Below, piece after piece: positions 9,445-57,949 of a DNA stretch of 64,000 bases. Position 1 is the stretch's first letter. The number at the start of each line of letters is the position of its first letter. The translations under genes were made by a program, and so were the position numbers. The DNA lies in the IMG/VR virus record IMGVR_UViG_3300027621_000003, positions 62,001 through 126,000 of that record; one strand, 5' to 3'. The notes beneath the pieces were generated by a model. That model ran no database searches and was not told the origin of the DNA. It worked only from the letters and a program-made list of their open reading frames with translations.

Positions 9445-9458
9445 TATTATATCTTATT

Positions 9459-10907: not shown

Positions 10908-10917
10908 CGTTTTACTA

Positions 10918-13735: not shown

Positions 13736-13739
13736 ATCT

Positions 13740-14339: not shown

Positions 14340-14358
14340 TTTTTTATTTTTTTTATGT

Positions 14359-15138: not shown

Positions 15139-15143
15139 TTGTT

Positions 15144-42418: not shown

Positions 42419-42658
42419 ATGGAAAATACTGAAAATACTGAAGAAATGTCAAAAAAAACACAAGAAATTATTGGTTCTCTTTTTGATACAATACATTACA
42501 CCTCAAATGAACAATTAAATTCACTTATTGATGGTATGAATGAAGAACAAGCGATATATTGTATAAGACAAGCATTAATCGCTTGCCACGTTAGAGGCGC
42601 ATTTACAATGGAAGAAACCGAAGCAGTTTCAAAGTCTTTAAGAGTTATAAATTCTTAA
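42419..42658 (+). CDS. Hypothetical protein
   Basis: 79-aa ORF. Confidence 0.55.
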   Translation: MENTENTEEMSKKTQEIIGSLFDTIHYTSNEQLNSLIDGMNEEQAIYCIRQALIACHVRGAFTMEETEAVSKSLRVINS

Positions 42659-43077
42659 GGTCTTGATGGTGTGGGTGTAGGTGTTTTTGTTGGAGTAACC
42701 GTAGGTGTTGATGTATTAGTTGTGGTTACACTTGGAGTAACCGTAGGTGTTACTGTATTTGTTGGAGTTACACTTGGTGTTACTGTATTTGTTGGAGTTA
42801 CACTTGGTGTTACTGTATTTGTTGGAGTTACACTTGGAGTTACTGAAGGAGTTGCGGTATTGCTTGGTGTTTGAGTAACTGGTGGCCATTCAATTGTAGA
42901 ATCTATTGTTAAATTTGAAAACGCCGTTTTATATGTACCATCAACATACCAAATGTTTACGGTTTCGTTTCCTTGAATTTCGTAATTATTAAATACAAAA
43001 TTATCATCACATCTTGTGTATGATATTACTTTAATACTTTCTGAAGTATTTGTTATTGTTGATTTTTTACAGGCCAT
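42655..43077 (-). CDS. Small Cys-domain protein with Thr/Pro mucin-like tail, directly downstream of the capsid gene
   Basis: MACKK..SYTRCDD domain then (SVTPTNTVTP)n; own GTATTTATA motif at 43101-43109. Confidence 0.7.
   Translation of the reverse strand: MACKKSTITNTSESIKVISYTRCDDNFVFNNYEIQGNETVNIWYVDGTYKTAFSNLTIDSTIEWPPVTQTPSNTATPSVTPSVTPTNTVTPSVTPTNTVTPSVTPTNTVTPTVTPSVTTTNTSTPTVTPTKTPTPTPSRP
42746..42835. repeat. Perfect 30-bp tandem repeat x3
   Basis: GGTGTTACTGTATTTGTTGGAGTTACACTT x3. Confidence 0.9.
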
Positions 43078-43120
43078 AATTTAATTATTTTTTTTATACA
43101 TATAAATACCACGTAAAAAC

Positions 43121-43149
43121 AAAAAAGGGAACCGAAGTTCCCTTTTTTT
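43121..43149 (-). terminator. Intrinsic terminator after the major capsid gene
   Basis: AAAAAAGGGAAC-CGAA-GTTCCCTTTTTTT hairpin (UUCG loop on the minus strand). Confidence 0.85.
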
Positions 43150-43166
43150 ATAAGTTTTAAGATAAA

Positions 43167-45023
43167 TTATCTTAATTCTTGTAAGTTGAATGTTCTTACA
43201 CCATCAACTGTTACTCTACCATAGAAACGGTTGTTAACCATTTTCTTAGCGTATCTTGTCATGATACCCTTGATAGGTGTGAAGTTGAATGGGTTATACA
43301 TAGTTGGAGTCAACTGTAAAGGAACATATGGAGCGTAGATGTACCCTGTATCCAACAAGCTAGTACCTTTGTGTCCGATTAACACTTGGTTAGCTGGGAA
43401 GTAAGGGTCACGATACACTTGGTATCTTCCTGACAATGTACCAACTCTTTCAATACCCATGTTGTATTGGTCTTGCTCAGGAGCTGCATTTGATACGTGG
43501 AAGTATTCCAAGTCATCAAAGATAGCAGATACTTCAGAAGATACAACAATCCAGTTAGCACCACCTCTTAAAGTTGATTTGTGAATTTGAGCAGACAATT
43601 GGTTAATTGCTGTAATCAAAGTTTGGTTCCAATCTTTTTGAGTGTAAGGAGTTGTACCAGCAGAAGATAGTCTCTTCCAACCGTTGTAATCCCATCTCAA
43701 GTTCCAAGCTGCACCTTTTCTCAAATCTCTCAAGATTTCTCTATCAATTTCTGCAGCAACTTGCTCAGATAATAATGCTGTTAATTCAGCCTCAGCATCA
43801 ATGTTGTGGAATGCCGCAACGTCTTGAGCTAATTCAGGAGACCATTGTGCTCTCAATTTTCTTTCTGTAACAGAAACAGTTACTGACTCAAGGTCAAAAG
43901 AAACTTCACCGATTTGGTCTTCAAATTCCAACTCTTTATACAATCTGTAAACTGCTAAGAATGCATTATTTGAACTTGTTGTAGATGAGAATGTTGAACC
44001 TGTGTAACCGTCCATAGATGAATCACCACAAGTAATACAAACTGGTACTTGTAAATCAATTTCTAAGAATATGAAACCATTAGCATCACATACGTTGTAG
44101 AAAGAACCACCTGAGTTAGCGTTGTAAGCACCAGGTCCACCAGGGAAATTAACTGTAACATTACTACCATACTGAACAATACCTTTACCATATCTTTGAG
44201 TTACAACTCTGAATAAGTAAGGGTTACTTGTGTTAGCTGAAGTTGTTCCGTTAGTAGAAACACCTAAGATGTTCAAACCTGATATGAATTCTTCAGTATC
44301 CATAGTATTACCATTAGGACCAATCAATTGACCAGCACCAGCGTTAGAGAAACCACTCATAACAATAATTACTTTTCTGTAATTATCTGTACCGTATGCT
44401 GCAGGTAATAAATAACCAGCGTTAGACCAAGCGTAAGTTACAGTTGAAGCAGTTACTGCTGTCCACTGACCTTTTGAATAGTCAAACAAACCAGGAGGAT
44501 TTAATCCAGCTTCGTTACCTTCGTAGAATAAGTCATATAAATCCTTATTGTAAATAGGGTTGAAGTCACCTGTTCCTGAATTGTAACCAGCATCTGGATT
44601 ACCATTATAGTTTCCTGGAGCACCTATAGGAGCGTAGTGTGAACCACTATTTCCAAATAGACCATCTGTTGATGTACCACCAGAATAACCTTGAATTTTA
44701 GGTACGAAGTAGAACAATTTACCGATTGGTAAGTTCATTGCTTGTACAGACACGATGTCGTTAGCTAATAATTTAGAGAATACTCTTCTCACGATTGGGA
44801 AAACAACCGTTTCAAAAGAACCTGAATCAGAAGTTGAAGAAGCTTCGTTAATTAAGTGTGAAGCTTGGTTTTCATACAACTGAGCCACGTTTTCTTTCAT
44901 GTGACCTTTTAGACCTTCTAAAAAGCCAAGTTTATCCCATTTGTTGATTGTGTCTTCTTTGATAACTTTAAGGTGTTTCAAACCAATGTTACCAACAAGA
45001 CCGCTTTCTAATAATGCACCCAT
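43167..45023 (-). CDS. Major capsid protein (T4 gp23-like)
   Basis: PIVRRVF..ANDIVSVQAMNLP, RKLRAQWSPELAQD..H.IDAEAEL..EIDREI, GYIYAPYVPL, FTPIKGIMTRYA. Confidence 0.95.
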   Translation of the reverse strand: MGALLESGLVGNIGLKHLKVIKEDTINKWDKLGFLEGLKGHMKENVAQLYENQASHLINEASSTSDSGSFETVVFPIVRRVFSKLLANDIVSVQAMNLPIGKLFYFVPKIQGYSGGTSTDGLFGNSGSHYAPIGAPGNYNGNPDAGYNSGTGDFNPIYNKDLYDLFYEGNEAGLNPPGLFDYSKGQWTAVTASTVTYAWSNAGYLLPAAYGTDNYRKVIIVMSGFSNAGAGQLIGPNGNTMDTEEFISGLNILGVSTNGTTSANTSNPYLFRVVTQRYGKGIVQYGSNVTVNFPGGPGAYNANSGGSFYNVCDANGFIFLEIDLQVPVCITCGDSSMDGYTGSTFSSTTSSNNAFLAVYRLYKELEFEDQIGEVSFDLESVTVSVTERKLRAQWSPELAQDVAAFHNIDAEAELTALLSEQVAAEIDREILRDLRKGAAWNLRWDYNGWKRLSSAGTTPYTQKDWNQTLITAINQLSAQIHKSTLRGGANWIVVSSEVSAIFDDLEYFHVSNAAPEQDQYNMGIERVGTLSGRYQVYRDPYFPANQVLIGHKGTSLLDTGYIYAPYVPLQLTPTMYNPFNFTPIKGIMTRYAKKMVNNRFYGRVTVDGVRTFNLQELR

Positions 45024-45059
45024 TTTAGTATTTTTTTTGTTTTTAAGTTTTATTTATTT

Positions 45060-46673
45060 TTATTTTTGTATTTTTTGCATAATATCCTTCATTCTTAAGA
45101 ACTGTGGATTTTCATACGTTTTTGACTCAATTAAGTTTTGTGAAGAACCTGATGCTGGAGATTTTCCAATTTTTTCAATAGATTCTGTTACAACACTTTG
45201 AGTACTACTTGTTGTGTTTAATTCTCCTTTAATTGATGAATATAAAGTTTTAGACTCTTTTAATGATTCAACATCATCAAATCTTCTTAAGATATTAATT
45301 TTTTCTTGTTTAGTTGTAGTATGTTCAGTAAACAATCTTGTAGCGTAAGCCAAGTTTGAATTAAATACTGCAACTTCATTTAATTTATCTCTGAAGATAT
45401 TAAGAGCTTTTCTATACTCTTCATTTTTTTCTCTTAATCTTTCAACTTCCTCAGCAAGAGCTTGATTTGGAATTACTTTCATTTTAGGTAAACCTTTTCT
45501 TTCAGCATAATTTCTAGTTCCATTACCTAATGTTCTAGCCGCTTCTTTAGTTTCCTCTTTTTCGTAATCTTTGTAATGACCATCTTTTTCACCAGCTTTC
45601 TTTTCAACACCATCAACATCCTTACGTCTGTATTCGTGTTTTTTAGAACCATACTTATCTTTCATTTCAGCTTCAGTGTATTCAAACTTTTTAGGTTTCA
45701 AATTCATACCAACTCCTTTAGCCATACCTTTTGGTTCAATAGCCGATTCTTTGGTTTCCATTTTTCTACCTTCTTTATATTCAAATTTAGCACTTCCGGT
45801 TTTAACACCTTTACCTACTACAGGTTTACTCATCATTGACCCTTCTTTAGTTTCCATTTTTTTAACTTTGTTAGTTAAAGAGGATTTAGTTAATTTACCC
45901 ATAACTGGTTTAATTGTCATTTTACCTTCAAACATGCTTTCATCACCACTATAATCATTCATGCTTTTATCATCACTATCATCATCCATGTAATCATCCA
46001 TTTCTATTTCATACACTACTTCATCCTCATCAACAACACCATCCTCATTATCATCACCATAATCATTCGGTTGTTCGTAAATGTTCATCTCTTCACCGAA
46101 AATATCAGCCATCATAGAATCTAAATCCTCGTCTGATAATTCTTCTTCTCCATCCATTTCTTGCATAGGTTCGTTTTCCATGTAACTTTCAGTTTGAATA
46201 ATGTATTCAACATCTTCGTCTTCATCACTCAAAGTAATTTGGTCGCCATCTTGTTTAACAATGATACCATCTTCATCACTCATAGATTTAAAAACCTTTA
46301 AGATTTCATCATCAGATGCGTTTGTAAGGTCAATTGGTAGTGTATCATCAGAATCCATATCAAAGTCCATCTCAAGTTCATCTTCCGATTCATCATCGTC
46401 AGAATCCATATCAATGTCCATTTCAACATCATCCATGTTTTCATCATCAGAATCCATATCCATATCCATGTCTAAATCATCTTCCGATTCATCATCCATT
46501 TCAACTCCCATTGATTCATCTTCAGCCTCGTTTTTCAAAGACTCTTTTACTAATTCTGAGATTTCTTCCTTCATTGTAGAAGCAAGTATTCCTTTTGCAT
46601 TTTCGGCAACTACTTGTTCCAAATTTCTCATTTGTAGTAGTGCTTCCTCAACTAACGACTTTTTTTCTGTCAT
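45060..46673 (-). CDS. Prohead scaffold/core protein (gp22-like position)
   Basis: Acidic D/E/M low-complexity region plus coiled coil, many LxE sites, directly upstream of the capsid gene. Confidence 0.7.
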   Translation of the reverse strand: MTEKKSLVEEALLQMRNLEQVVAENAKGILASTMKEEISELVKESLKNEAEDESMGVEMDDESEDDLDMDMDMDSDDENMDDVEMDIDMDSDDDESEDELEMDFDMDSDDTLPIDLTNASDDEILKVFKSMSDEDGIIVKQDGDQITLSDEDEDVEYIIQTESYMENEPMQEMDGEEELSDEDLDSMMADIFGEEMNIYEQPNDYGDDNEDGVVDEDEVVYEIEMDDYMDDDSDDKSMNDYSGDESMFEGKMTIKPVMGKLTKSSLTNKVKKMETKEGSMMSKPVVGKGVKTGSAKFEYKEGRKMETKESAIEPKGMAKGVGMNLKPKKFEYTEAEMKDKYGSKKHEYRRKDVDGVEKKAGEKDGHYKDYEKEETKEAARTLGNGTRNYAERKGLPKMKVIPNQALAEEVERLREKNEEYRKALNIFRDKLNEVAVFNSNLAYATRLFTEHTTTKQEKINILRRFDDVESLKESKTLYSSIKGELNTTSSTQSVVTESIEKIGKSPASGSSQNLIESKTYENPQFLRMKDIMQKIQK

Positions 46674-46755
46674 ATTATTATAGAATAATTTAACATATAA
46701 ATATATCCATATGCCAAAAAATTCTGTTTGGGCTTAGTAAAAACCCTAAATAAAT

Positions 46756-46784
46756 AAAAAACCCCTCGGTTATGAGGGGTTTTT
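46756..46784 (-). terminator. Intrinsic terminator
   Basis: AAAAAACCCCTC-GGTTAT-GAGGGGTTTTT hairpin. Confidence 0.8.
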
Positions 46785-46785
46785 A

Positions 46786-46998
46786 TTAATCTTGAATAAC
46801 TTCGTCTATTTTACTTTCGGAGACCGCTGTGATTCTCCAATCATGTTGAAACCCAGTATATCGGGATGTTACCTTGGCTTCAACATCAGTTACAGAGTAA
46901 CCTTTAACCAATTTTTCCTCTCGGATTTTTTTTAATTTTCCTGTATTTTCATCAGGTAAATCGTACTGTACTTTTGCTACAAAATATTTCTCGTCCAT
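46786..46998 (-). CDS. DUF4494-like small protein
   Basis: YFVAKVQY..ENTGKLKKIREEKLV..SVTDVEAKV resembles the Bacteroidota DUF4494 N-terminus. Confidence 0.55.
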   Translation of the reverse strand: MDEKYFVAKVQYDLPDENTGKLKKIREEKLVKGYSVTDVEAKVTSRYTGFQHDWRITAVSESKIDEVIQD

Positions 46999-47009
46999 GT
47001 TTTTTTAAA

Positions 47010-47741
47010 TTATTTGTCTAAATAATGATTTAATTTTTTTAATAAGTCAATAGAGCGATTCATTTTTGTTCCACTTTCTTGTTCTATTGGAGATGTTCTT
47101 AAAACTTTTTCTTCTTCTAAATTTTCTTCAAATTTGTTTCTATCATCAGGATTTGTAAATAAGTAAGCACCGGGTGTAGATGGTGAAGATACCAAATCAA
47201 AACAGATTAATTCAAAATCATCTTGTACTTCATTTTGTTCACCAGTCTTTTTTAATGAACCAACTCCACGTGAAGATATACCCAAAGTAACACCTTGTCT
47301 TAACAAGTTTGCTGCTTGGTCACCCTTTGTAGATACAATCCCTCTCTCATGGAATCCTGGTGAGGTTAGAAGACGTAACTTACCCATAAGGATATGTCCG
47401 TCCCACCAAATGTCATTAATGATGTGAGACACACGGTCAAGGTCAATTAATGATGATTCAGGGTGATTTAATTCTGAAAGAGATGTTCCTTTTTCAATCA
47501 TCTTTTTATAATTTTCAGATTCACGTTTTAAAATTCTTTCAGGGTACACCCTACCATTACGGTTTGGTGTGTTGTATTTTTGAAGTACGGCATAGAATTC
47601 AAAAGGTTTTGAATAATCCAAGAAATTCTTGTGATTTTCTTCAAGCATCTTTTTATTAAATTCATGAGATGGTGACACATATCCTGCGTCCATTTCAATC
47701 AATATTCCTTTACCTGTCTCGGTAGGTCCTAATATTTTCAT
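47010..47741 (-). CDS. Prohead maturation protease (T4 gp21-like)
   Basis: NRNGRVYP, ELNHP, VSH, GISSRGVGS, DLVSSPSTPGAY. Confidence 0.92.
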   Translation of the reverse strand: MKILGPTETGKGILIEMDAGYVSPSHEFNKKMLEENHKNFLDYSKPFEFYAVLQKYNTPNRNGRVYPERILKRESENYKKMIEKGTSLSELNHPESSLIDLDRVSHIINDIWWDGHILMGKLRLLTSPGFHERGIVSTKGDQAANLLRQGVTLGISSRGVGSLKKTGEQNEVQDDFELICFDLVSSPSTPGAYLFTNPDDRNKFEENLEEEKVLRTSPIEQESGTKMNRSIDLLKKLNHYLDK

Positions 47742-47763
47742 ACGTATGTTTTAGTAATAAATA

Positions 47764-48210
47764 CTAGGATGCTTCTTCTTTGCTCTTTTTAGATAGTGTA
47801 AAATCAAAATACTCGTTCTTTTTAAAGTTTTCAATATAAATTTCTTTGGCAATTCTTTTTAATTTATCTTTAAGAATTGTATCTTTAAAATCTATTTCTT
47901 GAGATAAGAATAAAGTAATTTCCAAATTCATAAAACTTTTCTTCCCGTAAACAATCCCGCTAGTTCTTAAATCCAAGTCAATAATATAATTGTCTTTAAA
48001 AAATGTTGGGTCTAGTATTTCAAATATTGTATGTTTTATCTGTCTACTAAAATTTGATACTATTCTTTCCCAATTGTTATAACTTTGTTTTGGTGAAACC
48101 CAACTTTGTAGATTAAGATAAACCGATTTAAAATTTTTGGAATCAACTGTTCCATAACTCACTTTTGAATTGTTGAATCCTACAATTCGTGATGTTTTTC
48201 CTTTTTTCAT
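47764..48210 (-). CDS. Hypothetical protein
   Basis: 148-aa ORF. Confidence 0.6.
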   Translation of the reverse strand: MKKGKTSRIVGFNNSKVSYGTVDSKNFKSVYLNLQSWVSPKQSYNNWERIVSNFSRQIKHTIFEILDPTFFKDNYIIDLDLRTSGIVYGKKSFMNLEITLFLSQEIDFKDTILKDKLKRIAKEIYIENFKKNEYFDFTLSKKSKEEAS

Positions 48211-48308
48211 TAATATTCATGTGTATAAATTGTTTATTGTTTGAAAAAAAATAATCTAATTTGTTTCTATTGTCAAATTTTTACCAACTTTGTATTATTT
48301 ACTATAAT

Positions 48309-49198: not shown

Positions 49199-49211
49199 AT
49201 TAATAAATATA

Positions 49212-51020
49212 TCAATCAATTAGTTTTCCTAATTGTTCTTCAATAATACCTAAAGAACGTCTACCTTTTTCCAAATCAATTTCATCAACACCATAAACAT
49301 TATCTCTTTCTAATAATATATTCATATTCTTTTTAACAGATTCAGGTGTGATTGCAGTTTCACCTTCAGCCGGTGGAAGTTCACCTCCTGCCGGTGGAGC
49401 TCCACCTAAATCAGCCCCTAATCCACCACCTTCAGCCGGTGGAGATGTTGTTCCTGATGATGGACCATTACCATAAAGTTTATCAATATTATCGAATAAT
49501 CCGGTATGTGTTATAACATTAGGTGTTGCTTCAATTTCAGCGGCAACCGCTTTCTCAACTCTTTGTTGTTGTAAATCAAGTTTAATATCTTCATCAGAAA
49601 AACCAAGAATGTGTTTCTTAGCCCATGTTTGTGATGTTGGAGCGATACCTTCAACCTTTGTTACAGCGTCTTTGTACAACAACATTTTTTCTTTCCAAAC
49701 ATCTATTGTTAGTAAGTCAGCTTGTTTAGATGGGTTAGTTAAACTCAATTGGAACGAGTTTAATTCGTCTTCAAAACCCAATAAAAATAAATGAACAATT
49801 GCAATTTTGTTAAGTTCTGCAACCATAGATTTTTGAATTCTATTGATTGTTCTTGCAAAACGAATATCTTGTAACGATAAATTTCTACCATCACCAACAA
49901 CCTCTTCAAATCCCAAGAATGCTTTTGGTATTCTTAACGCTGTTAAAAGTTTCTTTTGAATGTATTCAATGTCGGCAATCTCCGATAAGTTTGTCGCTCC
50001 TGGCAAAGTCTCAATTGGGTTTGGTGATGCCGGGTCTCTAACAGGTACAAAGAAATCTTGGTCAACCGCCATTTGATTGAATCTCATATCTACGTTTCCT
50101 GTTTGTGGGTCAGTTACTTGGTCTTTTTTAAATTGTTGAGCAAATCTTTGAACGTATGGTTGAATATCTGCATCATCCATGTTACCAACAAATACCTTAA
50201 ATACACGTCTTTCTGGTGCTCTTGATGTTCTATATACCAACATAGCATCTTCAGCAAGAATTAATTGTTTCCAAATTCTTCTTGCCTTTTCCAACATGGC
50301 GGTACCATATGGTAATTTTCTATCATCACCCAATAATCTAAAGTGAGCAACTTCCCAACTATTAAATTCCAAACTTTTGTTTTTCCAAGTAAATGTTAGG
50401 CTTTTGGCATCGCTACCCGAAGCAACCGCTCCACCCATACCTGAAGTTGCTTTACCTTTCATACCAACTTCAATACGTTCAATTTCAATGTTTGGTAATT
50501 GTAAACAACCAACAACACCTCTTTCAGGGTCCAACTTTAAAAACACGAAGTTGTCACCATATTTTGCGGTATTACGTGTCCACATTGGTAAGTTTGTGTT
50601 AATGTCCAAAGCGTTATTAAATAAATCTCCCAATACAGCCTTAATTCTTGGAGAATCGGAGTATATTTGTAACATGTATCCATTCTCATCAACTGTTGTT
50701 GATTCTTCAGCGTATGTATCTAATGCTGCAGAAATTTCAGGAGTATATTCCATTGACTCATAATCATAATACGATGCCAATCTAGTTGGTTGATAATAAA
50801 CCGCTTGTGAATATAAATTATTTTCAATTTTAGCCCATTGGCTTGTAATATAATATGTTTGTCTGGCTTGGAGTTTTTGTTTTTCATACTCATCCTTGTC
50901 AGTAGTTCTTAATAGTTCTTTTTTATCAAACTTATAAGTAGGTATGTCTTGACCCAACAATGAATTTGGTCCAAGTTCTTGGGACAATCGTTGCCATATT
51001 GTCAAGTTTTTTTCTTCCAT
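49212..51020 (-). CDS. Portal protein (T4 gp20-like)
   Basis: YESMEYTPEISAALD, KYGDNF, VAHFRL, EDAMLVYRTSRAPERRVF, IETLPGA, LRIPKAFL, QDIRFARTINRIQ. Confidence 0.93.
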   Translation of the reverse strand: MEEKNLTIWQRLSQELGPNSLLGQDIPTYKFDKKELLRTTDKDEYEKQKLQARQTYYITSQWAKIENNLYSQAVYYQPTRLASYYDYESMEYTPEISAALDTYAEESTTVDENGYMLQIYSDSPRIKAVLGDLFNNALDINTNLPMWTRNTAKYGDNFVFLKLDPERGVVGCLQLPNIEIERIEVGMKGKATSGMGGAVASGSDAKSLTFTWKNKSLEFNSWEVAHFRLLGDDRKLPYGTAMLEKARRIWKQLILAEDAMLVYRTSRAPERRVFKVFVGNMDDADIQPYVQRFAQQFKKDQVTDPQTGNVDMRFNQMAVDQDFFVPVRDPASPNPIETLPGATNLSEIADIEYIQKKLLTALRIPKAFLGFEEVVGDGRNLSLQDIRFARTINRIQKSMVAELNKIAIVHLFLLGFEDELNSFQLSLTNPSKQADLLTIDVWKEKMLLYKDAVTKVEGIAPTSQTWAKKHILGFSDEDIKLDLQQQRVEKAVAAEIEATPNVITHTGLFDNIDKLYGNGPSSGTTSPPAEGGGLGADLGGAPPAGGELPPAEGETAITPESVKKNMNILLERDNVYGVDEIDLEKGRRSLGIIEEQLGKLID

Positions 51021-51050
51021 AGTAAAAAGTTAATATATATGTATTTTTTA

Positions 51051-52820
51051 TCAACGCTTATATCCGCCGAACACCCATAAATAGTCTTGATAATCCTTTT
51101 GTGTTGGTTGATTTTGATATGCAATATTTGTTTTATATTGTGTATTTGGCATTGCCGGGTTAAAGTATTGTTCTTTTGGTGGGTCATAAGAAGTAACCTG
51201 CCAAGATTCCAACATTGTTTTTGCCTGTTGTGTGACCTTTGTAAGTTGTGAAAAAGATGAATCAGATACATAAACAGCCATAGCCAAAGACATAATTAAA
51301 TCATCATGTTGTCCTTTCATGTGGTCAGGTCTTCCATTAATATAAACAAATGTATTCATTTCATTCAATAATCTTGATGAATGAACTTTTAATCCGTGTC
51401 TTAATCCTTCCTCAAGAGCAGCAATAATTTGAACTCTTTTATTGTTAAAGTTAATACCAGGAATTTTTTCAGCCGCCTTTGGGTCATATTTCCATTTGTT
51501 ACCAAAATCTACACCATCAACATACAAATCTTTATATCCTAATTCTTGGAGTTTTCTTGCGGTAGCAACTCCCATACCACCCGTGATATCCACAACAATG
51601 AAACAGTTGTACATGTTACCCCATTTGTAAGCAATTTCTGCCAATACATCAGGAGGAAGTTTTCCAATATACTCAGCAACTTGGTCTCTTTCGTCAAAAT
51701 CATAAATTTGGAATGTTGAATAATCTTCAGAGTCCCCACGAGAAACGTCCACACCCATAATGTATCTGTGACCCATTTCAGGTTCTTTCCATATCCAAAG
51801 TCCACCACCCATCATTTTATTGATAGGTTCTTTAATCATATTATCTGTGATATTTTTAATTAAGTTAGAATCAAATACGTTATCACCTGAACCCAAAAAA
51901 TTACATTCCAATTCCTGTGAAACTTTACGCTTATCATACTTAAGTTTTTTAACCATCGCCTCAAACCAAGAGGAACATGGTTTATAACCTAAATCAAAAT
52001 AGGCTTTTAACTCATCATAATTTCTTTCATAAGGGTCACGACCTGAAAAATCAACAACACTATCGGCGGTATATTCTTCACGGTTTAACAGATAATGAAT
52101 AATTTCATTTGTTTTAACCAAATATAAATCTTTTGTATAACGAGGGTCACGATACCAATACATTTCTGTAATTTTGAAATCGTTCATTCCACGATTGGCT
52201 TGTTCGTAGATTTCATAGTAAATTGGGTCATATCCGTTTGGTGTTGATACAACAACAACTTTACCACCCGTAGACAACGAAGCCATACAGGCAGCCCAGA
52301 AATCACCATCCGCCTCAATATACGCAGCTTCATCAAATATCAACATAGTGGGGCTATAACCACGAAGTGCATCTTTTGATGTCGCAACGGCTTTAACTTC
52401 ACAACCGTTTGTTAATTTAAAATGTCTTGCCGCGTTTTTATCTGGTGAAAAACTTACACCAACCCAAGCAGGCCATTGTTCAGTAAATCCACGTATTTTG
52501 TTTGCCATTTCCACGGCAGTGTCCAATTTGTTCGCAATAATCAAAACCTTTTCAGGTCTTTGTTTTGATGCAAATACAAGTCTTTTACTTGCCCAAGCCG
52601 CAGTCACGGTAGATACACCCGCCTGACGGTATTTTAATGCAATGTTTTCGTTATAGGATTCATAATCCTCAACCAAATTAACTTGGTCAGGAAATAACTC
52701 TAATGGGACGTATCTTGACTGAGTATTATCATAAGTCTGAAGATACGTCTTAAGAGCGTATGGTGTATTTTTTATACACCTTGAATATTCTAATAGTAAT
52801 TGTTCTCTGGTTAAACCCAT
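51051..52820 (-). CDS. Terminase large subunit (T4 gp17-like)
   Basis: KYRQAGVST Walker A variant, LIFDEAA Walker B, VSTPNG, QELEC.F, GVDVSRG, HDDLIMS. Confidence 0.93.
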   Translation of the reverse strand: MGLTREQLLLEYSRCIKNTPYALKTYLQTYDNTQSRYVPLELFPDQVNLVEDYESYNENIALKYRQAGVSTVTAAWASKRLVFASKQRPEKVLIIANKLDTAVEMANKIRGFTEQWPAWVGVSFSPDKNAARHFKLTNGCEVKAVATSKDALRGYSPTMLIFDEAAYIEADGDFWAACMASLSTGGKVVVVSTPNGYDPIYYEIYEQANRGMNDFKITEMYWYRDPRYTKDLYLVKTNEIIHYLLNREEYTADSVVDFSGRDPYERNYDELKAYFDLGYKPCSSWFEAMVKKLKYDKRKVSQELECNFLGSGDNVFDSNLIKNITDNMIKEPINKMMGGGLWIWKEPEMGHRYIMGVDVSRGDSEDYSTFQIYDFDERDQVAEYIGKLPPDVLAEIAYKWGNMYNCFIVVDITGGMGVATARKLQELGYKDLYVDGVDFGNKWKYDPKAAEKIPGINFNNKRVQIIAALEEGLRHGLKVHSSRLLNEMNTFVYINGRPDHMKGQHDDLIMSLAMAVYVSDSSFSQLTKVTQQAKTMLESWQVTSYDPPKEQYFNPAMPNTQYKTNIAYQNQPTQKDYQDYLWVFGGYKR

Positions 52821-52832
52821 AAAAGGTTAGTG

Positions 52833-54128
52833 TTAGGACCTGTCAATACCTAAACTACCTAAGAAATCATCTAAATCACTCAAATCATCATCGTCAGGAC
52901 CCATAGTGTCACCATCTTCATCAGTATCATAGTCTTCGTCATCATCACTATGTACTTCATTCAAATGAGCTACAATTTCCTTAACCATTCTGTCCAAGAT
53001 TGATGTTGCTTTTGCATCACCTCTTAAAATCATTTTTGCTAATTTGAAAAACTCATCAGCCGAAAGTGCTGAAAATCTTGCAAAGAGGTAGTTTTGTATG
53101 AATTTTTTATCTTCTTCAAATAATTCTTCAGGATATGCTGCTAAGAATTTTTCCCACAATATTGGACCAATTCTTAAATCCCAAATTTCATTTGATAAGC
53201 TGTCAGTTGATGCCATGACCATTTCGGCTTGTTTTGGGTCATCAGGAAGACCTTGAGTACCCAAGATTTCCATTGTACCTTTAATTAACTCGTGAATTAA
53301 TATAGGAAAAAATACACCTGTCGCTTTAACTGTTGGAGGGTCAGTTTGAATATCTACTTCTTCTTTACCACCAACACCACCTTGACTCATCATCATGTCC
53401 ATCATTTCGTCAGGTAATACCCAATACAATAAATCATTTACAGACATAACAACACCGTACAAATTCAATAAGTCGGGGTCAACTCTATCTAATTCATCTC
53501 TAACTAATTCAAACATGTAATGTCCTTTTTTAGACGAACCTTGAATTAATGCGTTAATAAATCTTCTTTTTGCCTTTTCAATATCAAATCTTTCAAATGC
53601 TGAAATAAAATCTTCAAGGTCTTCTTCTTTTTCTTGGAAATTCTGTTCAACTTCTTCGTCTTCAGGTTCTTCACCTTGTTTTTGAAAACCAGACATATCA
53701 ATTTGACCTGGCATTACAAGTTCAGCAACATAATTAATTTGGTCTGGTCGTACACCCATTTCTTTTCTAACCAAATCAATCGCCAAATTTTCAAGATATT
53801 CTTTATGAGCCATTTGTTTTTGTAACAATTGCATGGCCATAGTCATCATCATTCTTTGTAATTGTTGTAAAGCGTTTCCTCTTGAGATGTCAGCACCAGC
53901 GTTTGGTACATAACGTCTAACTTTAGCAACAACATCTTTAAATCTTTTAGAAGCAACTAATTCTTCAAATGTCTCAGGTAAATTACCCTGTTCAATATTT
54001 GGAAATGCTGGATTTGTAGATAATGGAGTTCCTTTTGAAAGAATTGTTCTTTCAATATCAGGTGACATTCTTTCAGGTCTATCTCCATAATCAATTGGAG
54101 CTTCTCTAACGATTTGTTTCTTTTTCAT
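52833..54128 (-). CDS. Hypothetical protein (head module)
   Basis: 431-aa ORF with acidic tail. Confidence 0.65.
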   Translation of the reverse strand: MKKKQIVREAPIDYGDRPERMSPDIERTILSKGTPLSTNPAFPNIEQGNLPETFEELVASKRFKDVVAKVRRYVPNAGADISRGNALQQLQRMMMTMAMQLLQKQMAHKEYLENLAIDLVRKEMGVRPDQINYVAELVMPGQIDMSGFQKQGEEPEDEEVEQNFQEKEEDLEDFISAFERFDIEKAKRRFINALIQGSSKKGHYMFELVRDELDRVDPDLLNLYGVVMSVNDLLYWVLPDEMMDMMMSQGGVGGKEEVDIQTDPPTVKATGVFFPILIHELIKGTMEILGTQGLPDDPKQAEMVMASTDSLSNEIWDLRIGPILWEKFLAAYPEELFEEDKKFIQNYLFARFSALSADEFFKLAKMILRGDAKATSILDRMVKEIVAHLNEVHSDDDEDYDTDEDGDTMGPDDDDLSDLDDFLGSLGIDRS

Positions 54129-55105
54129 TATTGGTTTTTAAAGTCAATTTTTAATTGGTCAAATTCTAAATAATCAGGAATCTTAACAGTACCCATTTTT
54201 GGAGCTTCAGTAGACGCCTTTGGTTTTGGTTGATGTTTTGGGTTTTTAAAAGGGTCAGAAGTATTTGGTTTTTCTTTAGTACCAGGTTTTACTCTTGTAG
54301 GTGCTGGTGCTGTTTTTGTACCTTGTTCATCCATTTTTTCCGCTTTTGGTTTTGGTTGATGTTTTGGGTTTTTAAAAGGGTCCATTTTACCAGGTTTTTC
54401 CTTTTCTTTAGTACCAGGTTTTACTCTTGTAGGTGCTGTTTTTGTACTTTGTTCCATTGCTTCTTTTTTAGAAACATATGTGTTTTTATTTGATTTGTCC
54501 ATTTTTGTTTCATCAACAAATCCAATCATACTATTTTTAAATGGACGAGAAATTATTCCTTGTTCACTTAAAGTATTTAATAAATCAATTTTAGAAATTT
54601 TTGGTGATATATGTTTTTCAACCATTCTTAATAAAGAAGACTCAACAATTGGTAAATAAGGATTTTTACCTTCTTTAATATTTCTTTTTACATCCATCAC
54701 ACATCTTTCAAATTTTTTCTTATCTTCTCTACCAACTGATGAGGTACAAATTGCATATGGGTTATATTTTGATTTTTTCTTCGCTTCGCTAATATCTTCT
54801 TCTTTGTCAATACCATCATCGCCTTCATCATCCATACCATCAGGTGCTTGTACTTGATGTGGTTCTTGAGTAGTTTGACCAAGTTTTGAATCACTTTTAT
54901 CAACTTCTACACCTTGCTCATAAACTTCAAAAGGTTTTTTCTCGTTTTTTAATTTATCAATTGTTGCGGTGTCAGTTTTTGGTACCATTGTTATTTCAGA
55001 TACCATCATTTTATGCAATTGATTGATTTGACCTTCATTCATTGTTAATAACAATTTATGGCTCAATCCACGTTCCATTAGTTGTTTAATTTTTTTATTT
55101 TTCAT
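54128..55105 (-). CDS. Hypothetical K/P-rich protein with internal duplication
   Basis: Two copies of TKTAP..TRVKPGTKEK..DPFKNPKHQPKPKA; NPYAIC..FERCV motif; start could be 55111. Confidence 0.6.
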   Translation of the reverse strand: MKNKKIKQLMERGLSHKLLLTMNEGQINQLHKMMVSEITMVPKTDTATIDKLKNEKKPFEVYEQGVEVDKSDSKLGQTTQEPHQVQAPDGMDDEGDDGIDKEEDISEAKKKSKYNPYAICTSSVGREDKKKFERCVMDVKRNIKEGKNPYLPIVESSLLRMVEKHISPKISKIDLLNTLSEQGIISRPFKNSMIGFVDETKMDKSNKNTYVSKKEAMEQSTKTAPTRVKPGTKEKEKPGKMDPFKNPKHQPKPKAEKMDEQGTKTAPAPTRVKPGTKEKPNTSDPFKNPKHQPKPKASTEAPKMGTVKIPDYLEFDQLKIDFKNQ

Positions 55106-55493
55106 ATACAACGTCTTTTTCTAATTCTAAAATAATGTCTCTTTCGTACAATTTATCTTTTACTTTCTGTTCTGAATCTCCGAAACGAAAAACAAGACGG
55201 GTCTCATCTTCACAACTTTCATCTTTTTCCCAGGCTAACGCAATTACATCTTCCATTGCGTCTGTGACTCCCATAAAATCAGAGTCCTGTATAAGTTCAA
55301 GTTGGACCACCGTATTTTTCAGTAGTCCAACTTTCTTTATATGTTTTAATTCAGGTGGTTGTGGGTAACCGTGTGCTGGTCTTGAATCCCAATTTTCACC
55401 CCAAACGTCTAATTCATCACTAAAGATAAACTCATACATGTTATCTCCTCTATAATTTGGACCAAGTCCATTAATATAGATTAAATGACTCAT
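55095..55493 (-). CDS. Hypothetical protein
   Basis: 132-aa ORF, overlapping neighbours. Confidence 0.6.
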   Translation of the reverse strand: MSHLIYINGLGPNYRGDNMYEFIFSDELDVWGENWDSRPAHGYPQPPELKHIKKVGLLKNTVVQLELIQDSDFMGVTDAMEDVIALAWEKDESCEDETRLVFRFGDSEQKVKDKLYERDIILELEKDVVYEK

Positions 55494-56959
55494 AAAACTT
55501 CACCTTTTGGTGTTACTCTAATTTGTTCTCCGTTGTGTTCAAACACTAAATTACTTTTGTTTGTTTTTCCAACGAATTTAAAATTATTGTTTTCTTGTAA
55601 GATAAATTCAGACGCCAATTCTTGTTCGTAAGTTTCTGACAATTTTTTAACTTTGTCCATTACTTGTGTTTTTTGTTGCTTTGACTCAACAAGTTTTTTA
55701 CTTTTTGTTTTTTGTTCATTTTCATTTACAACAAAATATGATGATAAAACCTTATCAACTTTAGATTCACTAAAAATTTCATCCATAATTTTAGAAACAT
55801 GAGAATTAACTTTGTCTTCTTCAGACATTTCACTTCCCATTCTTTTAACTCTAACTTTCATTGGACCAAATTTTTCTTTGTATGCGTTGAACATTCTTTC
55901 ACCCTCAGGTCCTTTTTGAAACATCGCATTATTACTATGTTTTTTCATCATTGGTTCAAATTCATCAAACTCTTCCTCGTCAAAATCAAAGTCAAAACCA
56001 CCTTTATATGGTCTATCAGTTTCATCATACCATTCATCGTTTTTAAATGAACCATACATACCTTCTCCCATTTCACCATCAATTGGTTCTTCCATGTCCA
56101 TATCCATATCTACGTCCATATCTTCGTCATCACCCATAGAACCCATATCCATATCTGAATCATAATCAGATTCTTGGTCTTCTTCAAATTTTGACATGAT
56201 ATCTTCTTGGTCTTCTTCGTCAAGTTTGCTCAAATCCAATGCTGACAATAATGAATTAATAACATACTTAACATCTTCAGAAGTCATTCCAACAGAATCA
56301 TTCATCATTCTGATTTTTTGACCCAATTTGCCTGTAAGTTTTTGAATAGTTTTAAATGTAATATCTTCTTCCTCACCAGCCATTGGTTCTTCTTCAGAAC
56401 TCATATCCATATCCATATCACCTTCAGGTGTATCTAATTCCATGTCCATATCCATTTCATCACCAGCTGGCATATCCAAAGATGCATCATCTAATGGTGC
56501 ATCCATTGAACCTTCTTCAGGTGCAGGAGCAGGTGGTGGAAGTTCAGCTGCCGGTTCTGGCATTGGTGCCGGTGCTTTAGGAGTTTTTAATGTAAATTTT
56601 TTTTGTTCTGAAATTTGATACATTGAAACCTCTTCTTCGTTTTCAACAAGTCTATTAATTTCACCTGCCATAAGGTTCAATCTTTTTAATGCTTGTGAAT
56701 AAGAACGATAATACGTTCTATTTTTCATTGGCTCAATGTAATCCAAAGATTCATCAATTCTTTTCTTTATGATGTAACCAGTTTTTTCTTTTACAATCTC
56801 ATACTGATGACCATCTGCTAACGTTTTTTCAAACTCCACTCTTGAAGTTTCATTAATGTTAGATGGTGCGGTTTCTTTATATCTAGAAATTTCAAGGATT
56901 CTATTGATTTTATCTTGTCCTTGTAATCTCTCACTTCCGATTGGTTTTAAGTCAGCCAT
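55490..56959 (-). CDS. Acidic low-complexity head-associated protein
   Basis: D/M/E-rich tracts like the scaffold; multiple INE/ISE/LVE/LSE sites. Confidence 0.55.
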   Translation of the reverse strand: MADLKPIGSERLQGQDKINRILEISRYKETAPSNINETSRVEFEKTLADGHQYEIVKEKTGYIIKKRIDESLDYIEPMKNRTYYRSYSQALKRLNLMAGEINRLVENEEEVSMYQISEQKKFTLKTPKAPAPMPEPAAELPPPAPAPEEGSMDAPLDDASLDMPAGDEMDMDMELDTPEGDMDMDMSSEEEPMAGEEEDITFKTIQKLTGKLGQKIRMMNDSVGMTSEDVKYVINSLLSALDLSKLDEEDQEDIMSKFEEDQESDYDSDMDMGSMGDDEDMDVDMDMDMEEPIDGEMGEGMYGSFKNDEWYDETDRPYKGGFDFDFDEEEFDEFEPMMKKHSNNAMFQKGPEGERMFNAYKEKFGPMKVRVKRMGSEMSEEDKVNSHVSKIMDEIFSESKVDKVLSSYFVVNENEQKTKSKKLVESKQQKTQVMDKVKKLSETYEQELASEFILQENNNFKFVGKTNKSNLVFEHNGEQIRVTPKGEVL

Positions 56960-56983
56960 TTTTATATTTTTTGTTTTTTATGT

Positions 56984-57949
56984 TTAAGAGTTTAATCCAT
57001 TAAATCCACCAAGAGCAACTGAGTCAACTTGGACTACAGACCTTCCTTGTGCATTTGAATATATTGCGTGTGGCATTGCTTGTGTAGTTGTATCACCTGA
57101 ACATGTAATACAATCTTCATATACTATTGTTCCACTACTTGTATTAGTTGTTCCACCTGTAAGAGCAAATCCACTTAAGGTAGGTGTTGGTGTTAAGGTA
57201 GGTGTTTTAGTTACAGTCGCAGTAACACTTGGTGTAACTGTTTTTGTTGGAGTAACCGTTGGTGTTTTAGTTACAGTTGCGGTAACACTTGGTGTAACTG
57301 TTTTTGTTGGAGTAACCGTTGGTGTTTTAGTTACAGTTGCGGTAACACTTGGTGTAACTGTTTTTGTTGGAGTAACACTTGCGGTAACACTTGGTGTTTG
57401 TGTTTTAGTAACACTTGGTGTTGGTGTATTAGTTGTTGTAACTGTTGGTGTAACCGTTTTAGTTACAGTTGCGGTAACACTTGGTGTCACAGTATTTGTT
57501 GCAGTTACAGAAGGTGTTACGGTTTTAGTTGGTGTAACACTTGGTGTTGTAGTATTAGTTGGTGTAAGTGTTGGTGTCGCAGTTTTTGTTGGAGTTACTG
57601 ATGGTGTTGCAGTTTTTGTAACACTTGGTGTAACTGTATTTGTTGGTGTTACAGTAGGTGTTTTAGTTACAGTAGGTGTTACAGTTGCGGTAACACTTGG
57701 TGTTGGAGTAGGTGTTGAGGCTCCTTGACATGTGGCACAGTCATTATAATTTGTAGATTGAGTAGCAACAGTATCAATACCAACACCTGGTTCAGCGGTA
57801 TCTACAATTTCGTAACAACCACTATCAGTTGAACCTACAAATGTTAAGAAATAATTTCCTCCAACAACTGGAAGCGTACTACTACTAAATTCAACTAAAA
57901 TTGCCGATGGTCCTTCACAGGGTGCTATTAAATATGTTACTAATGCCAT
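56984..57949 (-). CDS. Cys-domain protein with long Thr/Pro mucin-like tract (start MALVTY at 57949)
   Basis: N- and C-terminal Cys motifs (YNDCATC, YEDCITC) flanking about 180 aa of TPSVTATVTK repeats; ATATTTATA at 57960-57968. Confidence 0.75.
   Translation of the reverse strand: MALVTYLIAPCEGPSAILVEFSSSTLPVVGGNYFLTFVGSTDSGCYEIVDTAEPGVGIDTVATQSTNYNDCATCQGASTPTPTPSVTATVTPTVTKTPTVTPTNTVTPSVTKTATPSVTPTKTATPTLTPTNTTTPSVTPTKTVTPSVTATNTVTPSVTATVTKTVTPTVTTTNTPTPSVTKTQTPSVTASVTPTKTVTPSVTATVTKTPTVTPTKTVTPSVTATVTKTPTVTPTKTVTPSVTATVTKTPTLTPTPTLSGFALTGGTTNTSSGTIVYEDCITCSGDTTTQAMPHAIYSNAQGRSVVQVDSVALGGFNGLNS
57180..57720. repeat. Thr/Pro coding repeat containing a 60-bp tandem unit
   Basis: 57241-57300 identical to 57301-57360, with degenerate flanking copies. 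Confidence 0.9.

Follow-up and report, generated by a model that had tools for sequence, protein, structure and literature searches.

Thr/Pro-tract proteins of a freshwater T4-like jumbo phage and their genomic linkage to a GT60 glycosyltransferase homologue

The window, a stretch of 64,000 nucleotides from the virus record IMGVR_UViG_3300027621_000003, was analyzed with a focus on open reading frames (ORFs) that join a small module to a long Thr/Pro (T/P) tract. Only three T/P-tract ORFs were present in the whole 117.6-kb record, and all three were located in the window; these were designated P0001, P0002, and P0003. Table 1 summarizes the coordinates of the corresponding features. P0002 started 89 nt after the stop of a capsid gene, which was identified by PF07068 (E 4.6e-73) and phrog_138, and the variable insertion of the capsid protein was recognized from an alignment of 20 relatives. 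In the case of P0003, the ATG at 57949 was the start used by homologues. P0001 was followed directly by a gene for a glycosyltransferase homologue, which was part of a larger island of glycan-enzyme genes found by Pfam scans. A preliminary description had proposed that P0002 and P0003, together with a Cys module inside P0001, form a dispersed family of Cys-domain plus T/P-tail proteins in the head module, and the observation itself was confirmed, as both ORFs and their architecture were found as described.

Table 1. Coordinates of the T/P-tract genes and neighboring features in the window.
Feature	Coordinates	Strand	Description
Glycan-enzyme island, remaining minus-strand part	799..16710	-	WcbI, an NAD epimerase/dehydratase, methyltransferases, Fringe-like, GT61, GT25, GT11, GT10
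GT60-family (PF11397 'GlcNAc') glycosyltransferase homologue	16722..17969	-	415 aa
P0001	18027..21971	-	1314 aa; conserved N-terminal region of about 700 aa
P0001 C-terminal Laminin_G_3 domain	18069..18560	-	
P0001 T/P tract 2	18693..19178	-	
P0001 module C	19179..19388	-	4-Cys module
P0001 T/P tract 1	19389..19862	-	
Promoter-like motif of P0001	21977..21984	-	GTATTTAT, 13 nt upstream of P0001
Further GT gene	24644..25855	+	
Further GT gene	27160..28590	+	
Further GT gene	29246..29908	+	
UDP-Glc dehydrogenase-like gene	29910..30980	+	
P0002	42655..43077	-	140 aa; stop codon 42655-42657
P0002 Thr/Pro tail	42658..42879	-	residues 67-140
P0002 repeat	42746..42837	-	three exact 30-bp coding units (PTNTVTPSVT)
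P0002 module A	42880..43077	-	residues 1-66
Promoter-like motif of P0002	43102..43109	-	GTATTTAT, 32 nt upstream of the P0002 start
Terminator-like hairpin	43121..43148	-	between the capsid gene and P0002
Major capsid protein (Gp23 type)	43167..45023	-	618 aa; variable insertion at about residues 113-355
P0003	56984..57949	-	321 aa
P0003 C-terminal peptide	56987..57163	-	residues 263-321, conserved
P0003 Thr/Pro tract	57164..57715	-	residues 79-262
P0003 repeat	57222..57376	-	about 2.6 exact 60-bp coding units
P0003 N-module	57716..57949	-	residues 1-78
Promoter-like motif of P0003	57961..57968	-	ATATTTAT, 19 nt upstream of the P0003 ATG

The predicted structures and compositions agreed with a folded module joined to a disordered tract. 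Module A of P0002 contains Cys and was modeled by AlphaFold2 as five beta strands with a mean pLDDT of 90, while its tail consisted of 41% Thr and 22% Pro. In the case of P0003, the N-module was predicted with pLDDT 85-94, whereas the tract of about 186 aa, with 43% Thr, and the C-terminus were below 50. Among 35 homologues of P0003, C11, C45, C71, and C74 were invariant, and the conserved C-terminal peptide ended in ...LGGFNGLN(S/N), with ...ALGGFNGLNS in P0003 itself. Overall, the tracts contained 41-48% Thr, 16-23% Pro, and 2-11% Ser over 74-186 aa, and as extended tandem repeats rich in Thr and Pro, they have the sequence properties of mucin-like domains. Moreover, no D-(S/T)-(A/I/L/V/M/T) motif was present in the tracts, and therefore the Bacteroidota O-glycosylation sequon of the host type is not what they offer.

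The tracts were built from exact repeat units at the DNA level. In P0002, TRF found a period of 30 with 3.8 copies, a 62-nt exact self-match at period 30 started at 42746, and the exact unit was found twice in tandem at 42762-42821. In P0003, TRF found a period of 60 with 2.9 copies and 98% matches, and a 95-nt exact self-match was present at period 60. The preliminary description had suggested that such units can expand or contract in frame, and this was supported by strain variants, since near-identical metagenomic variants differed by 10-aa and 20-aa steps. Among P0002 homologues of 111-141 aa, which have a conserved module and a variable tail, modules with 96-100% identity (100% in the 120-aa and 131-aa forms) carried tails giving 120, 130, 131, and 140 aa. 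Similarly, N-modules of the P0003 type with 100% identity gave 261, 281, and 321 aa. However, these were short-read assemblies, and the Logan contigs broke inside the repeat at 42775-42808, so that the copy numbers rest on assemblies and not on reads. Among the wider relatives, the string attached to the conserved module ranged from none (66 aa) to more than 757 aa with extra domains.

A resemblance between the modules of P0002 and P0001 (SYTDC versus SYTRC) had been suspected, and this kinship was supported. BLASTP found nothing, but an iterated profile started from the P0001 module reached module-A proteins over their whole length, and hhalign gave a probability of 75%, which increased to 93.7% (E 1.9e-7 over 50 columns) with intermediates added. 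In contrast, the N-module of P0003 was not detectably related to either. The hhalign probabilities were 1.1% and 0.3%, BLASTP found nothing, and the predicted topologies also differed, as P0003 has five strands plus a helix at its CxxC. Accordingly, P0003 shares the architecture but not the domain, and the proposed family is only half right.

The RTATTTAT motif was found upstream of all three genes in gene orientation. However, the motif was not specific to them, since 13 of 21 occurrences were located within 60 nt upstream of a gene in the same orientation and 3 in the opposite orientation, while about 0.7 would be expected by position. It precedes at least 13 genes, including the protease, the scaffold-like gene, and other head-module genes, and is a general promoter-like element of this phage, not a mark of the family. 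The T4-type late promoter TATAAATA did not show this orientation, as it occurred 2 times in the same and 9 times in the opposite orientation within 60 nt upstream of genes, whereas TATTTATA / RTATTTAT occurred 10-13 times in the same and 2-3 times in the opposite orientation. The terminator-like hairpin consisted of a 12-pair stem followed by a T run. RNA contigs identical to the window covered P0002 at lower depth than the capsid gene; in one metatranscriptome run (X15), exact-contig depth fell from 44-90 on the capsid gene to 6-7 on P0002 and to zero further on.

P0001 carried the Laminin_G_3 domain (PF13385, E 1.6e-18), and this region also matched a PHROG annotated as a virion structural protein. 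Orthologues of P0001 in relatives kept the N-terminal part and varied in what follows the tract. Module C had 24 HMMER relatives, all of which were beads-on-a-string T/P proteins. In other phage contexts, a two-copy module-C protein with poly-Thr linkers followed a GT6 gene inside a crAss-like muzzle module, and another followed epimerase and PIG-L genes. Relatives of the modules were also located inside structural modules of several unrelated phages, some next to tail-fibre-type genes, although module-C proteins in two other phage contigs had no GT gene within 10 kb.

The gene downstream of P0001 gave the new result. It matched PF11397 with E 3.1e-64 and 218 bits against a cut-off of 21; PF11397 corresponds to CAZy GT60, in which DxH is the metal-binding motif. 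The motif was present as D-S-H in 'LQIDSHMRF' and was invariant in relatives, no N-terminal membrane anchor was found, and a sequence search returned no solved relative. The gene was conserved in 4 of 5 long related records and in 487 viral contig stretches. In the relatives G002, G003, and G005, 3-4 further T/P-linked module proteins were located between the P0001 orthologue and GT60, some of which started with a module-A-type 'MAC(K/S)KYTLTN...' domain. Over 47 related loci, 41 had 1-4 T/P-tract genes upstream of GT60, with a median gap of 89 nt and always on the same strand. The density was 2.49 per 10 kb upstream, compared with 0.30 downstream and 0.16 around the capsid gene, which was about 15 times the density around the capsid gene. 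However, all 80 GT60 loci came from one lineage (76-100% identity), so the linkage is conserved synteny and not independent co-occurrence. Moreover, P0002 and P0003 themselves were located 25 kb and 39 kb from GT60, and the GT60 homologues in the Xanthomonas phage XacN1 were not beside a mucin-like gene, as the nearby 3313-aa protein had only one short PT linker.

Characterized GT60 enzymes put GlcNAc on Thr of mucin-like repeats, as GlcNAc-alpha-O-Thr (PMC9472816, PMC8724618, PMC3769586). The most likely mechanism, held with moderate confidence, has three steps. The three proteins, which have no signal peptide, would be expressed late and made in the cytoplasm. Each is built as 'beads on a string', with one or more small, Cys-containing beta modules joined to a long T/P tract that does not fold on its own. 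The neighboring GT60 homologue, a soluble relative of the polypeptide alpha-GlcNAc-transferases that start mucin-type O-glycosylation in protists, would add a first sugar to the many Thr residues of the tracts in the infected cell. Subsequently, the surrounding GT10, GT11, GT25, GT31-like, and GT61 enzymes would extend the glycan and turn the tracts into stiff, protease-resistant, mucin-like stalks. Finally, the proteins would be built into the virion surface through a terminal module, for which module A of P0002 and the N-module or C-terminal peptide of P0003 are the candidates. In this view, the exact repeats let the stalk length change in frame by slippage or unequal recombination. Our analysis demonstrated the protein architecture, the predicted folded modules and disordered tracts, the homology of the P0002 module with the P0001 inner module, the length variants among assembled strains, the tight and directional linkage of T/P genes to GT60, the promoter-like motif, and the presence in metatranscriptomes. 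In contrast, the glycosylation of the tracts, the transferase activity of the GT60 homologue, the presence of the proteins in the virion, and their position on it are inferences without direct evidence of any glycan or a virion proteome from this lineage, and the capsid is possible for P0002 and P0003 but unproven.

Thus, the interpretation in the preliminary description, namely capsid-anchored, length-variable mucin stalks as the substrate side of the glycosylation system, was partly supported. The substrate reading gained real, though indirect, support by genomic linkage only, and the length variation was supported, whereas capsid anchoring was not supported beyond gene position. That P0002 and P0003 are capsid decoration proteins in the manner of Hoc or Soc, with the Cys module binding the Gp23-type lattice and the stalk pointing outward, is considered unlikely on present evidence. 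In its favor, P0002 follows the capsid gene with its own promoter-like motif, module A is always N-terminal while what follows it is free to vary, and in the closest relatives (capsid identity mostly 83% or more), and only in these, the same slot holds module A alone (66 aa, about Soc size) or module A plus tails. In three others (76-77% capsid identity), the slot holds a P0003-type protein without a tract. However, most relatives have unrelated genes there, including HTH/nuclease-like ones, so that the slot is a variable hot spot and position is weak evidence. In more distant relatives, the module-A-type genes sit beside GT60 instead of the capsid gene, P0003-family genes occupy at least three different positions, and homologous modules occur in the middle of long multi-bead proteins. 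Pfam found no family for P0002 or P0003, and their only PHROG match was to phrog_15511 (function unknown), mainly over the T/P tract. No match to Soc, Hoc, gpD, or Dec was found; the best Z values among the Foldseek or VIA-align matches were 5.4 and 4.9 against generic beta folds, and no Foldseek hit was obtained at E <= 0.001. The modules had no match in 50,697 GenBank phage records, and the prediction of a complex between the capsid protein and the module gave no answer.

It is likewise unlikely, and slightly less favored, that the tracts are plain, unglycosylated Pro/Thr linkers that only space the domains of modular fibre or adhesin proteins, while the glycosyltransferase island serves another target, such as host surface polysaccharide, the capsid protein itself, or DNA. 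Unglycosylated Pro/Thr linkers are common in modular bacterial proteins, and the distance of P0002 and P0003 from the island, the module-C proteins without a nearby GT gene, and the XacN1 case are consistent with this view. However, the directional adjacency of T/P genes to GT60 is hard to explain if they are unrelated, and tracts of 74 to more than 600 aa with 41-48% Thr are far longer and more Thr-rich than a spacer needs. Moreover, P0002 and several relatives end in a tract with nothing to link, and the only characterized GT60 activities are on protein Thr, Ser, or hydroxyproline. That the proteins are not virion parts but act inside the infected cell or are released at lysis, for example as decoys, glycan sinks, or matrix-binding proteins, is very unlikely, because, although no proteomic evidence exists and the P0002 transcript depth was about a tenth of that of the capsid gene in one metatranscriptome, they share the promoter-like motif with head-module genes, relatives of the modules lie in structural modules of unrelated phages, and P0001 matches the virion structural PHROG.

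On comparing these genes with described systems, one of the closest was virion O-glycosylation in mycobacteriophages (Freeman et al. 2023, as summarized in PMC12619734), in which phage-encoded glycosyltransferases are thought to modify phage structural proteins in the host cytoplasm and the glycans sit on terminal extensions and shield the particle. In that system, short C-terminal stretches of the capsid and tail-tube subunits themselves are modified, whereas here the putative acceptors are separate genes with mucin-like tandem repeats of 74 to more than 600 aa and the initiating enzyme would be a GT60 homologue. In protist mucin-type O-glycosylation (T. cruzi TcOGNT and mucins; Dictyostelium), the enzyme family is the same and the acceptors are Thr-rich, Pro-containing tandem repeats (PMC9472816, PMC8724618, PMC3769586). 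Dictyostelium PsA has a length-polymorphic PTVT repeat spacer that carries O-GlcNAc. However, the protist enzymes are Golgi type-II membrane proteins acting on secreted or GPI-anchored proteins, except for cytoplasmic Gnt1, which acts on Skp1 hydroxyproline, while the phage enzyme would act in a bacterial cytoplasm on virion proteins. T4 Hoc and Soc are small or modular non-essential proteins added to a Gp23-type lattice, and Hoc displays domains outward, but it uses Ig-like domains and not Thr/Pro tracts. Similar to the glycosylated surface fibrils of Mimivirus and the chlorovirus capsid glycans, a large virus carries its own multi-enzyme glycosylation island and would decorate its particle independently of host machinery, although those are eukaryote-infecting Nucleocytoviricota with unrelated capsids and this is a tailed phage with a T4-type head module. 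The PT box linkers of bacterial cellulases and CBM proteins also separate small disulfide-stapled beta modules by (PT)n and are O-glycosylated in the native host in some cases, but those are secreted enzymes, while the phage proteins have no signal peptide and no catalytic domain, and their tracts are much longer and tandemly repeated at the DNA level.

As T/P-tract genes of this kind sit directly upstream of a phage homologue of the enzyme that starts mucin-type O-glycosylation in protists, this roughly 320-kb phage, whose complete relatives are about 321 kb, may coat part of its particle with its own mucin-like glycoproteins. A broader reading is possible but tentative, namely that a lineage of freshwater T4-like jumbo phages carries a complete, self-encoded mucin-type O-glycosylation system, in which a bacterial-cytoplasm GT60 initiator and a dozen extending enzymes act on a dedicated, rapidly evolving set of mucin-like virion proteins, including one encoded right after the capsid gene. 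If so, the particle would wear a length-variable glycocalyx of its own making, which would be a prokaryotic-virus counterpart of protist mucin coats and giant-virus fibrils.

The window corresponds to bases 47636-111635 (reverse strand) of a 117.6-kb IMG/VR virus record, which was rated 39% complete by CheckV. It has approximately 30% G+C, contains no tRNA genes, and carries a T4-type head module. The coordinates of the features are summarized in the table below. A megablast search of the region found no match, and the nearest capsid proteins among sequenced phages, from an uncultured 484-kb phage, Microcystis phage Mel-JY01 and Flavobacterium phage immuto, are 40-44% identical. However, relatives are very common in viral contigs, with at least 598 capsid matches. 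Two relatives are 321-kb records (L183 and L184), and the one that was checked (L183, also G006) has direct terminal repeats and is rated complete. This complete relative carries at least six dispersed T/P-tract ORFs, near 6 kb, 74 kb (the P0001 orthologue beside GT60), 118 kb (a P0003 orthologue, 60% identical), 181 kb, 252 kb and 310-313 kb. Moreover, 14 freshwater, lake or crustacean-associated DNA runs hold 99-100% of the sampled words, while six metatranscriptome runs hold 42-72%.

Features of the window and of related records
Record	Coordinates	Strand	Feature
window	16722-17969		PF11397 (GT60) glycosyltransferase homologue, directly downstream of P0001
window	18027-21971		P0001, 1314 aa
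window	25852-27157 and 31018-31770	+	PolB-exonuclease-like gene, dUTPase and PhoH gene
window	42655-43077		P0002, 140 aa
window	42655-43166		slot right after the capsid gene
window	43102-43109		GTATTTAT motif
window	43121-43148		terminator-like hairpin
window	43167-45023	-	Gp23-type major capsid protein; insertion at residues ~113-355
window	45060-46673	-	very acidic protein, 537 aa
window	47010-47741	-	prohead protease
window	49212-51020	-	Gp20-type portal
window	51051-52820	-	large terminase
window	54128-55111	-	protein of unknown function, 327 aa, upstream of the terminase
window	54215-54454	-	126-bp tandem repeat (1.9 copies) within the 327-aa protein gene
window	55490-56959	-	very acidic protein, 489 aa, following P0003
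window	56984-57949		P0003, 321 aa
window	59668-61662	+	ClpB-like double AAA+ chaperone (AAA_2, AAA_lid_9, ClpB_D2-small)
L023 (related locus)	4892-5218		module/T-P protein with the similar C-terminal peptide
L028 (related locus)	5607-5927		module/T-P protein with the similar C-terminal peptide
L110 (crAss-like contig)	8598-10696		GT6-family gene and two-copy module-C protein gene
AP018399.1 (XacN1)	222135-223508		ORF334, full-length GT60/PF11397 homologue

Within the head module, the capsid protein has a G/N/S/Y-rich insertion of about 240 aa that varies between relatives, while the rest of the protein is almost invariant, and the insertion is probably the exposed surface domain. The two very acidic proteins have D/E/M-rich repeats and no family match, and the first lies between the protease and the capsid gene, like a scaffold. 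The 126-bp repeat upstream of the terminase encodes a duplicated Lys/Pro-rich segment ('TKTAPTRVKPGTKEK...DPFKNPKHQPKPKA'). The chaperone gene lies next to the head module. A 2025 paper (PMC12619734) describes freshwater 'moraphages', large T4-related phages with chaperone genes, four core glycosyltransferase groups and predicted Flavobacteriia hosts, and this may be the same lineage.

The observation in the preliminary description was confirmed, as both the P0002 and P0003 ORFs exist as described. P0002 starts 89 nt after the capsid gene stop, and this gap holds the hairpin and the GTATTTAT motif. Residues 1-66 of P0002 (module A, with Cys3 and Cys23) were modelled as a five-stranded beta domain with a mean pLDDT of 90, while residues 67-140 are 41% Thr and 22% Pro. 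P0003 consists of a 78-aa N-module with pLDDT 85-94 and invariant C11, C45, C71 and C74, a tract of about 186 aa with 43% Thr and pLDDT below 50, and a conserved C-terminal peptide ending ...ALGGFNGLNS, which is not modelled as a domain on its own. The coding repeats include three exact 30-bp copies in P0002 and 2.6 exact 60-bp copies in P0003. To determine whether the two tracts exchange DNA, the exact P0002 30-mer was searched for in P0003, and no occurrence was found within 3 mismatches. Only three T/P-tract ORFs exist in the whole 117.6-kb record, and the third, P0001, has two tracts that flank a 70-aa four-Cys module (module C) and a C-terminal Laminin_G_3 domain.

The preliminary description had suggested that the modules are related, based on SYTDC versus SYTRC. 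Pairwise BLASTP between the modules found nothing. However, a full HMMER scan with the P0001 module found 24 relatives, nearly all of which are metagenomic proteins with such modules strung together by Thr/Pro or poly-Thr linkers, and a profile iterated from these relatives reached P0002-type modules over their whole length. Profile-profile comparison gave a probability of 75%, which rose to 93.7% (E 1.9e-7) after intermediate 'MAC(K/S)KYTLTN' modules from related phages were added. The suggestion is therefore supported for P0001 and P0002. In contrast, the N-module of P0003 is unrelated to both, with probabilities of 1% or less. Thus, the proposed family is an architecture shared by at least two unrelated module families.

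The only local BLASTP hit was the 'Y(N/E)DC(A/I)TC' motif on both sides of the P0003 tract. It was considered that the two CxxC motifs form a zinc or disulfide clasp that closes the tract into a loop, but this was rejected as a general feature because the second CxxC is absent in most homologues and AlphaFold2 does not pack the two ends together. Fold searches of both models against the PDB (Foldseek and wide VIA-align) and BFVD gave only generic small beta folds, namely, TRAP, cupin or jelly-roll half, and OB, Tudor or PriA 3'BD, and the best viral match was an uncharacterised 1322-aa protein of an uncultured phage. Atlas searches gave only unnamed viral clusters, and tblastn of module C and of the P0003 N-module against GenBank phages found no match. 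A complex prediction of the capsid protein with module A counted neither for nor against binding.

The length of the tracts varies among assembled homologues. P0002 homologues whose module is 96-100% identical have 120, 130, 131 or 140 aa and differ by blocks of 10 aa, and the 120-aa form lies in the same place after the capsid gene on at least 24 contigs from independent assemblies. Similarly, P0003 homologues with a 100% identical N-module have 261, 281, 281 and 321 aa and differ by blocks of 20 aa at different positions. However, these are short-read assemblies, and Logan contigs of four runs did not resolve the copy number because they end at 42775 and restart at 42808-42816, exactly in the P0002 repeat.

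To evaluate the gene after the capsid gene, 76 of the loci retrieved with the capsid protein were examined. In twelve loci, the slot holds a module-A gene, and the capsid identity in these is mostly 83-99%, with 79-80% in two. The module-A genes take several forms, namely, module A alone (66 aa), sometimes followed by a second paralogue, module A plus a bare T/P tail, module A plus tracts and extra globular domains up to more than 757 aa, and module A plus a short peptide, '...YFILYENGNIMTAQNNNGIEYQY'. A similar C-terminal peptide ends several otherwise different module/T-P proteins ('...YFILYENGNIMTAQNNNGIEYQY' and '...FFILIQNGDILTAQDGSGIEYQH'; in loci L023 and L028 and at the C-terminus of P0051), and it may be a shared docking or assembly tag. 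In three loci, the slot holds a 126-127-aa protein of the P0003 type, whose C-terminal part matches P0003 at E 1e-7 and which has no T/P tract at all. In most other loci, the slot holds unrelated genes, and across relatives (loci L009-L088) these include HTH/nuclease-like genes of about 230 aa, 240-260-aa 'MYYTTT...' genes and 350-500-aa 'MIKQTWNIS...' genes. P0003-family genes were also found at another position in a 56-kb contig. Thus, the module is the constant part and the tract and distal domains are accessory, and the position after the capsid gene is a plasticity hot spot, which weakens the argument from position.

The gene directly downstream of P0001 matches PF11397 at 218 bits (E 3e-64), has a D-S-H motif, and begins directly with the Rossmann strand, with no membrane anchor. 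PF11397 is CAZy GT60. Characterised GT60 enzymes are the polypeptide alpha-GlcNAc-transferases, which start mucin-type O-glycosylation on Thr-rich repeats in T. cruzi and Dictyostelium (PMC9472816, PMC8724618, PMC3769586). Other glycan-enzyme genes surround it, namely, GT10, GT11, GT25 and GT61, two Fringe-like genes, a GT2-like gene, methyltransferases, an epimerase/dehydratase and a UDP-sugar dehydrogenase-like gene. However, the PolB-exonuclease-like gene, the dUTPase and the PhoH gene are interspersed among the plus-strand glycosyltransferase genes, so this island is not purely glycan-related.

The GT60 gene is present in 4 of 5 long related records, and in three of those, three or four additional T/P-linked module proteins lie between the P0001 orthologue and GT60, some of which start with a module-A-type domain. 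Statistics were calculated over the 47 GT60 loci with at least 6 kb of upstream sequence, among the best 80 of at least 487 viral contig stretches carrying PF11397. In 41 of the 47 loci, 1-4 T/P-tract ORFs lie upstream, and the gap from the nearest T/P ORF to the GT60 start has a median of 89 nt, always on the same strand. The density of T/P ORFs per 10 kb is 2.49 upstream of GT60, compared with 0.30 downstream of GT60 and 0.16 around the capsid gene. As these loci all belong to one lineage (76-100% GT60 identity), this is conserved synteny rather than independent co-occurrence. The linkage nevertheless persists while the T/P genes themselves turn over.

Two unrelated contexts add a little to this linkage. 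In a crAss-like contig (L110), a 231-aa protein with two module-C copies and poly-Thr linkers lies directly after a 455-aa GT6-family gene, between the crAss_MUZ and crAss_MUZ_C muzzle genes, which is an independent pairing of a Thr-rich module protein with a glycosyltransferase inside a structural module. Another module-C protein follows epimerase and PIG-L genes. In contrast, other module-C proteins lie in the structural modules of small phages with no GT nearby. Moreover, full-length GT60/PF11397 homologues of 44-47% identity occur in the isolated Xanthomonas and Stenotrophomonas jumbo phages XacN1, Xoo-sp13, CM1 and RAS14 (AP018399.1, MN047793.1, OP883945.1, OP752703.1). In XacN1, the homologue lies beside a carbamoyltransferase and a GT9 gene and near a 3313-aa baseplate-adjacent protein, but it is not beside a mucin-like gene, as only one short PT linker was found nearby.

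In the case of expression signals, RTATTTAT is not enriched overall, with 21 occurrences against 25 expected, and its placement is what stands out. Of the 21 occurrences, 13 lie within 60 nt upstream of a gene in the gene's orientation and 3 lie in the opposite orientation, while about 0.7 would be expected by position. The 13 genes include P0001, P0002, P0003, the protease, the scaffold-like gene and others. It is therefore a general promoter-like element of this phage. It is not the T4 late promoter TATAAATA, which shows the opposite orientation bias. In one metatranscriptome run (X15), contigs identical to the window cover P0002 at depth 6-7 and the capsid gene at 44-90, and the depth falls to zero beyond 42400. 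This is the pattern expected for RNA, with attenuation at the hairpin, although DNA can be present in such libraries.

Accordingly, we propose that the proteins, none of which has a signal peptide, are made in the cytoplasm, where the soluble GT60 homologue would add the first sugar to the Thr-rich tracts and the neighbouring transferases would extend the glycan. The resulting stiff, mucin-like stalks would then be mounted on the virion through a terminal module, and repeat slippage or unequal recombination would change the stalk length in frame. The architecture, the module homology, the length variants among assembled strains, the synteny and the signals were shown by the analysis, whereas glycosylation, including the activity of the GT60 homologue, the virion location and the point of attachment are inferred. 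On present evidence, the whole chain is about as likely as not, and the version in which the stalks sit specifically on the capsid is doubtful. Thus, the interpretation in the preliminary description, that these proteins are capsid-anchored, length-variable stalks and the substrates of the glycosylation system, is supported only in part.

The closest known system is the phage-encoded O-glycosylation of the capsid and tail-tube termini in mycobacteriophages (cited in PMC12619734), from which the present case differs in having separate, long, tandem-repeat acceptor proteins, as inferred here, and a GT60-type candidate initiator. In the proposed view, it works like protist mucin glycosylation, but it would run in a bacterial cytoplasm. 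It resembles Hoc in idea only, with no family or fold membership. No paper describing such phage proteins was found in the literature search.

Virion glycosylation in phages is known from only a few cases, where short termini of the capsid or tail-tube proteins are modified. A phage that encodes both a GT60-type initiator and separate mucin-like acceptor proteins would extend mucin-type O-glycosylation to a bacterial cytoplasm and to tailed phages, and it would offer a soluble, anchor-free GT60 enzyme and natural acceptor peptides for biochemistry and glyco-engineering. Moreover, it would give a concrete explanation for the large glycosyltransferase islands seen in abundant freshwater jumbo phages, and it would suggest how such particles tune surface properties, such as adhesion, protection from proteases or grazers, and host-range steps, through simple in-frame repeat changes.
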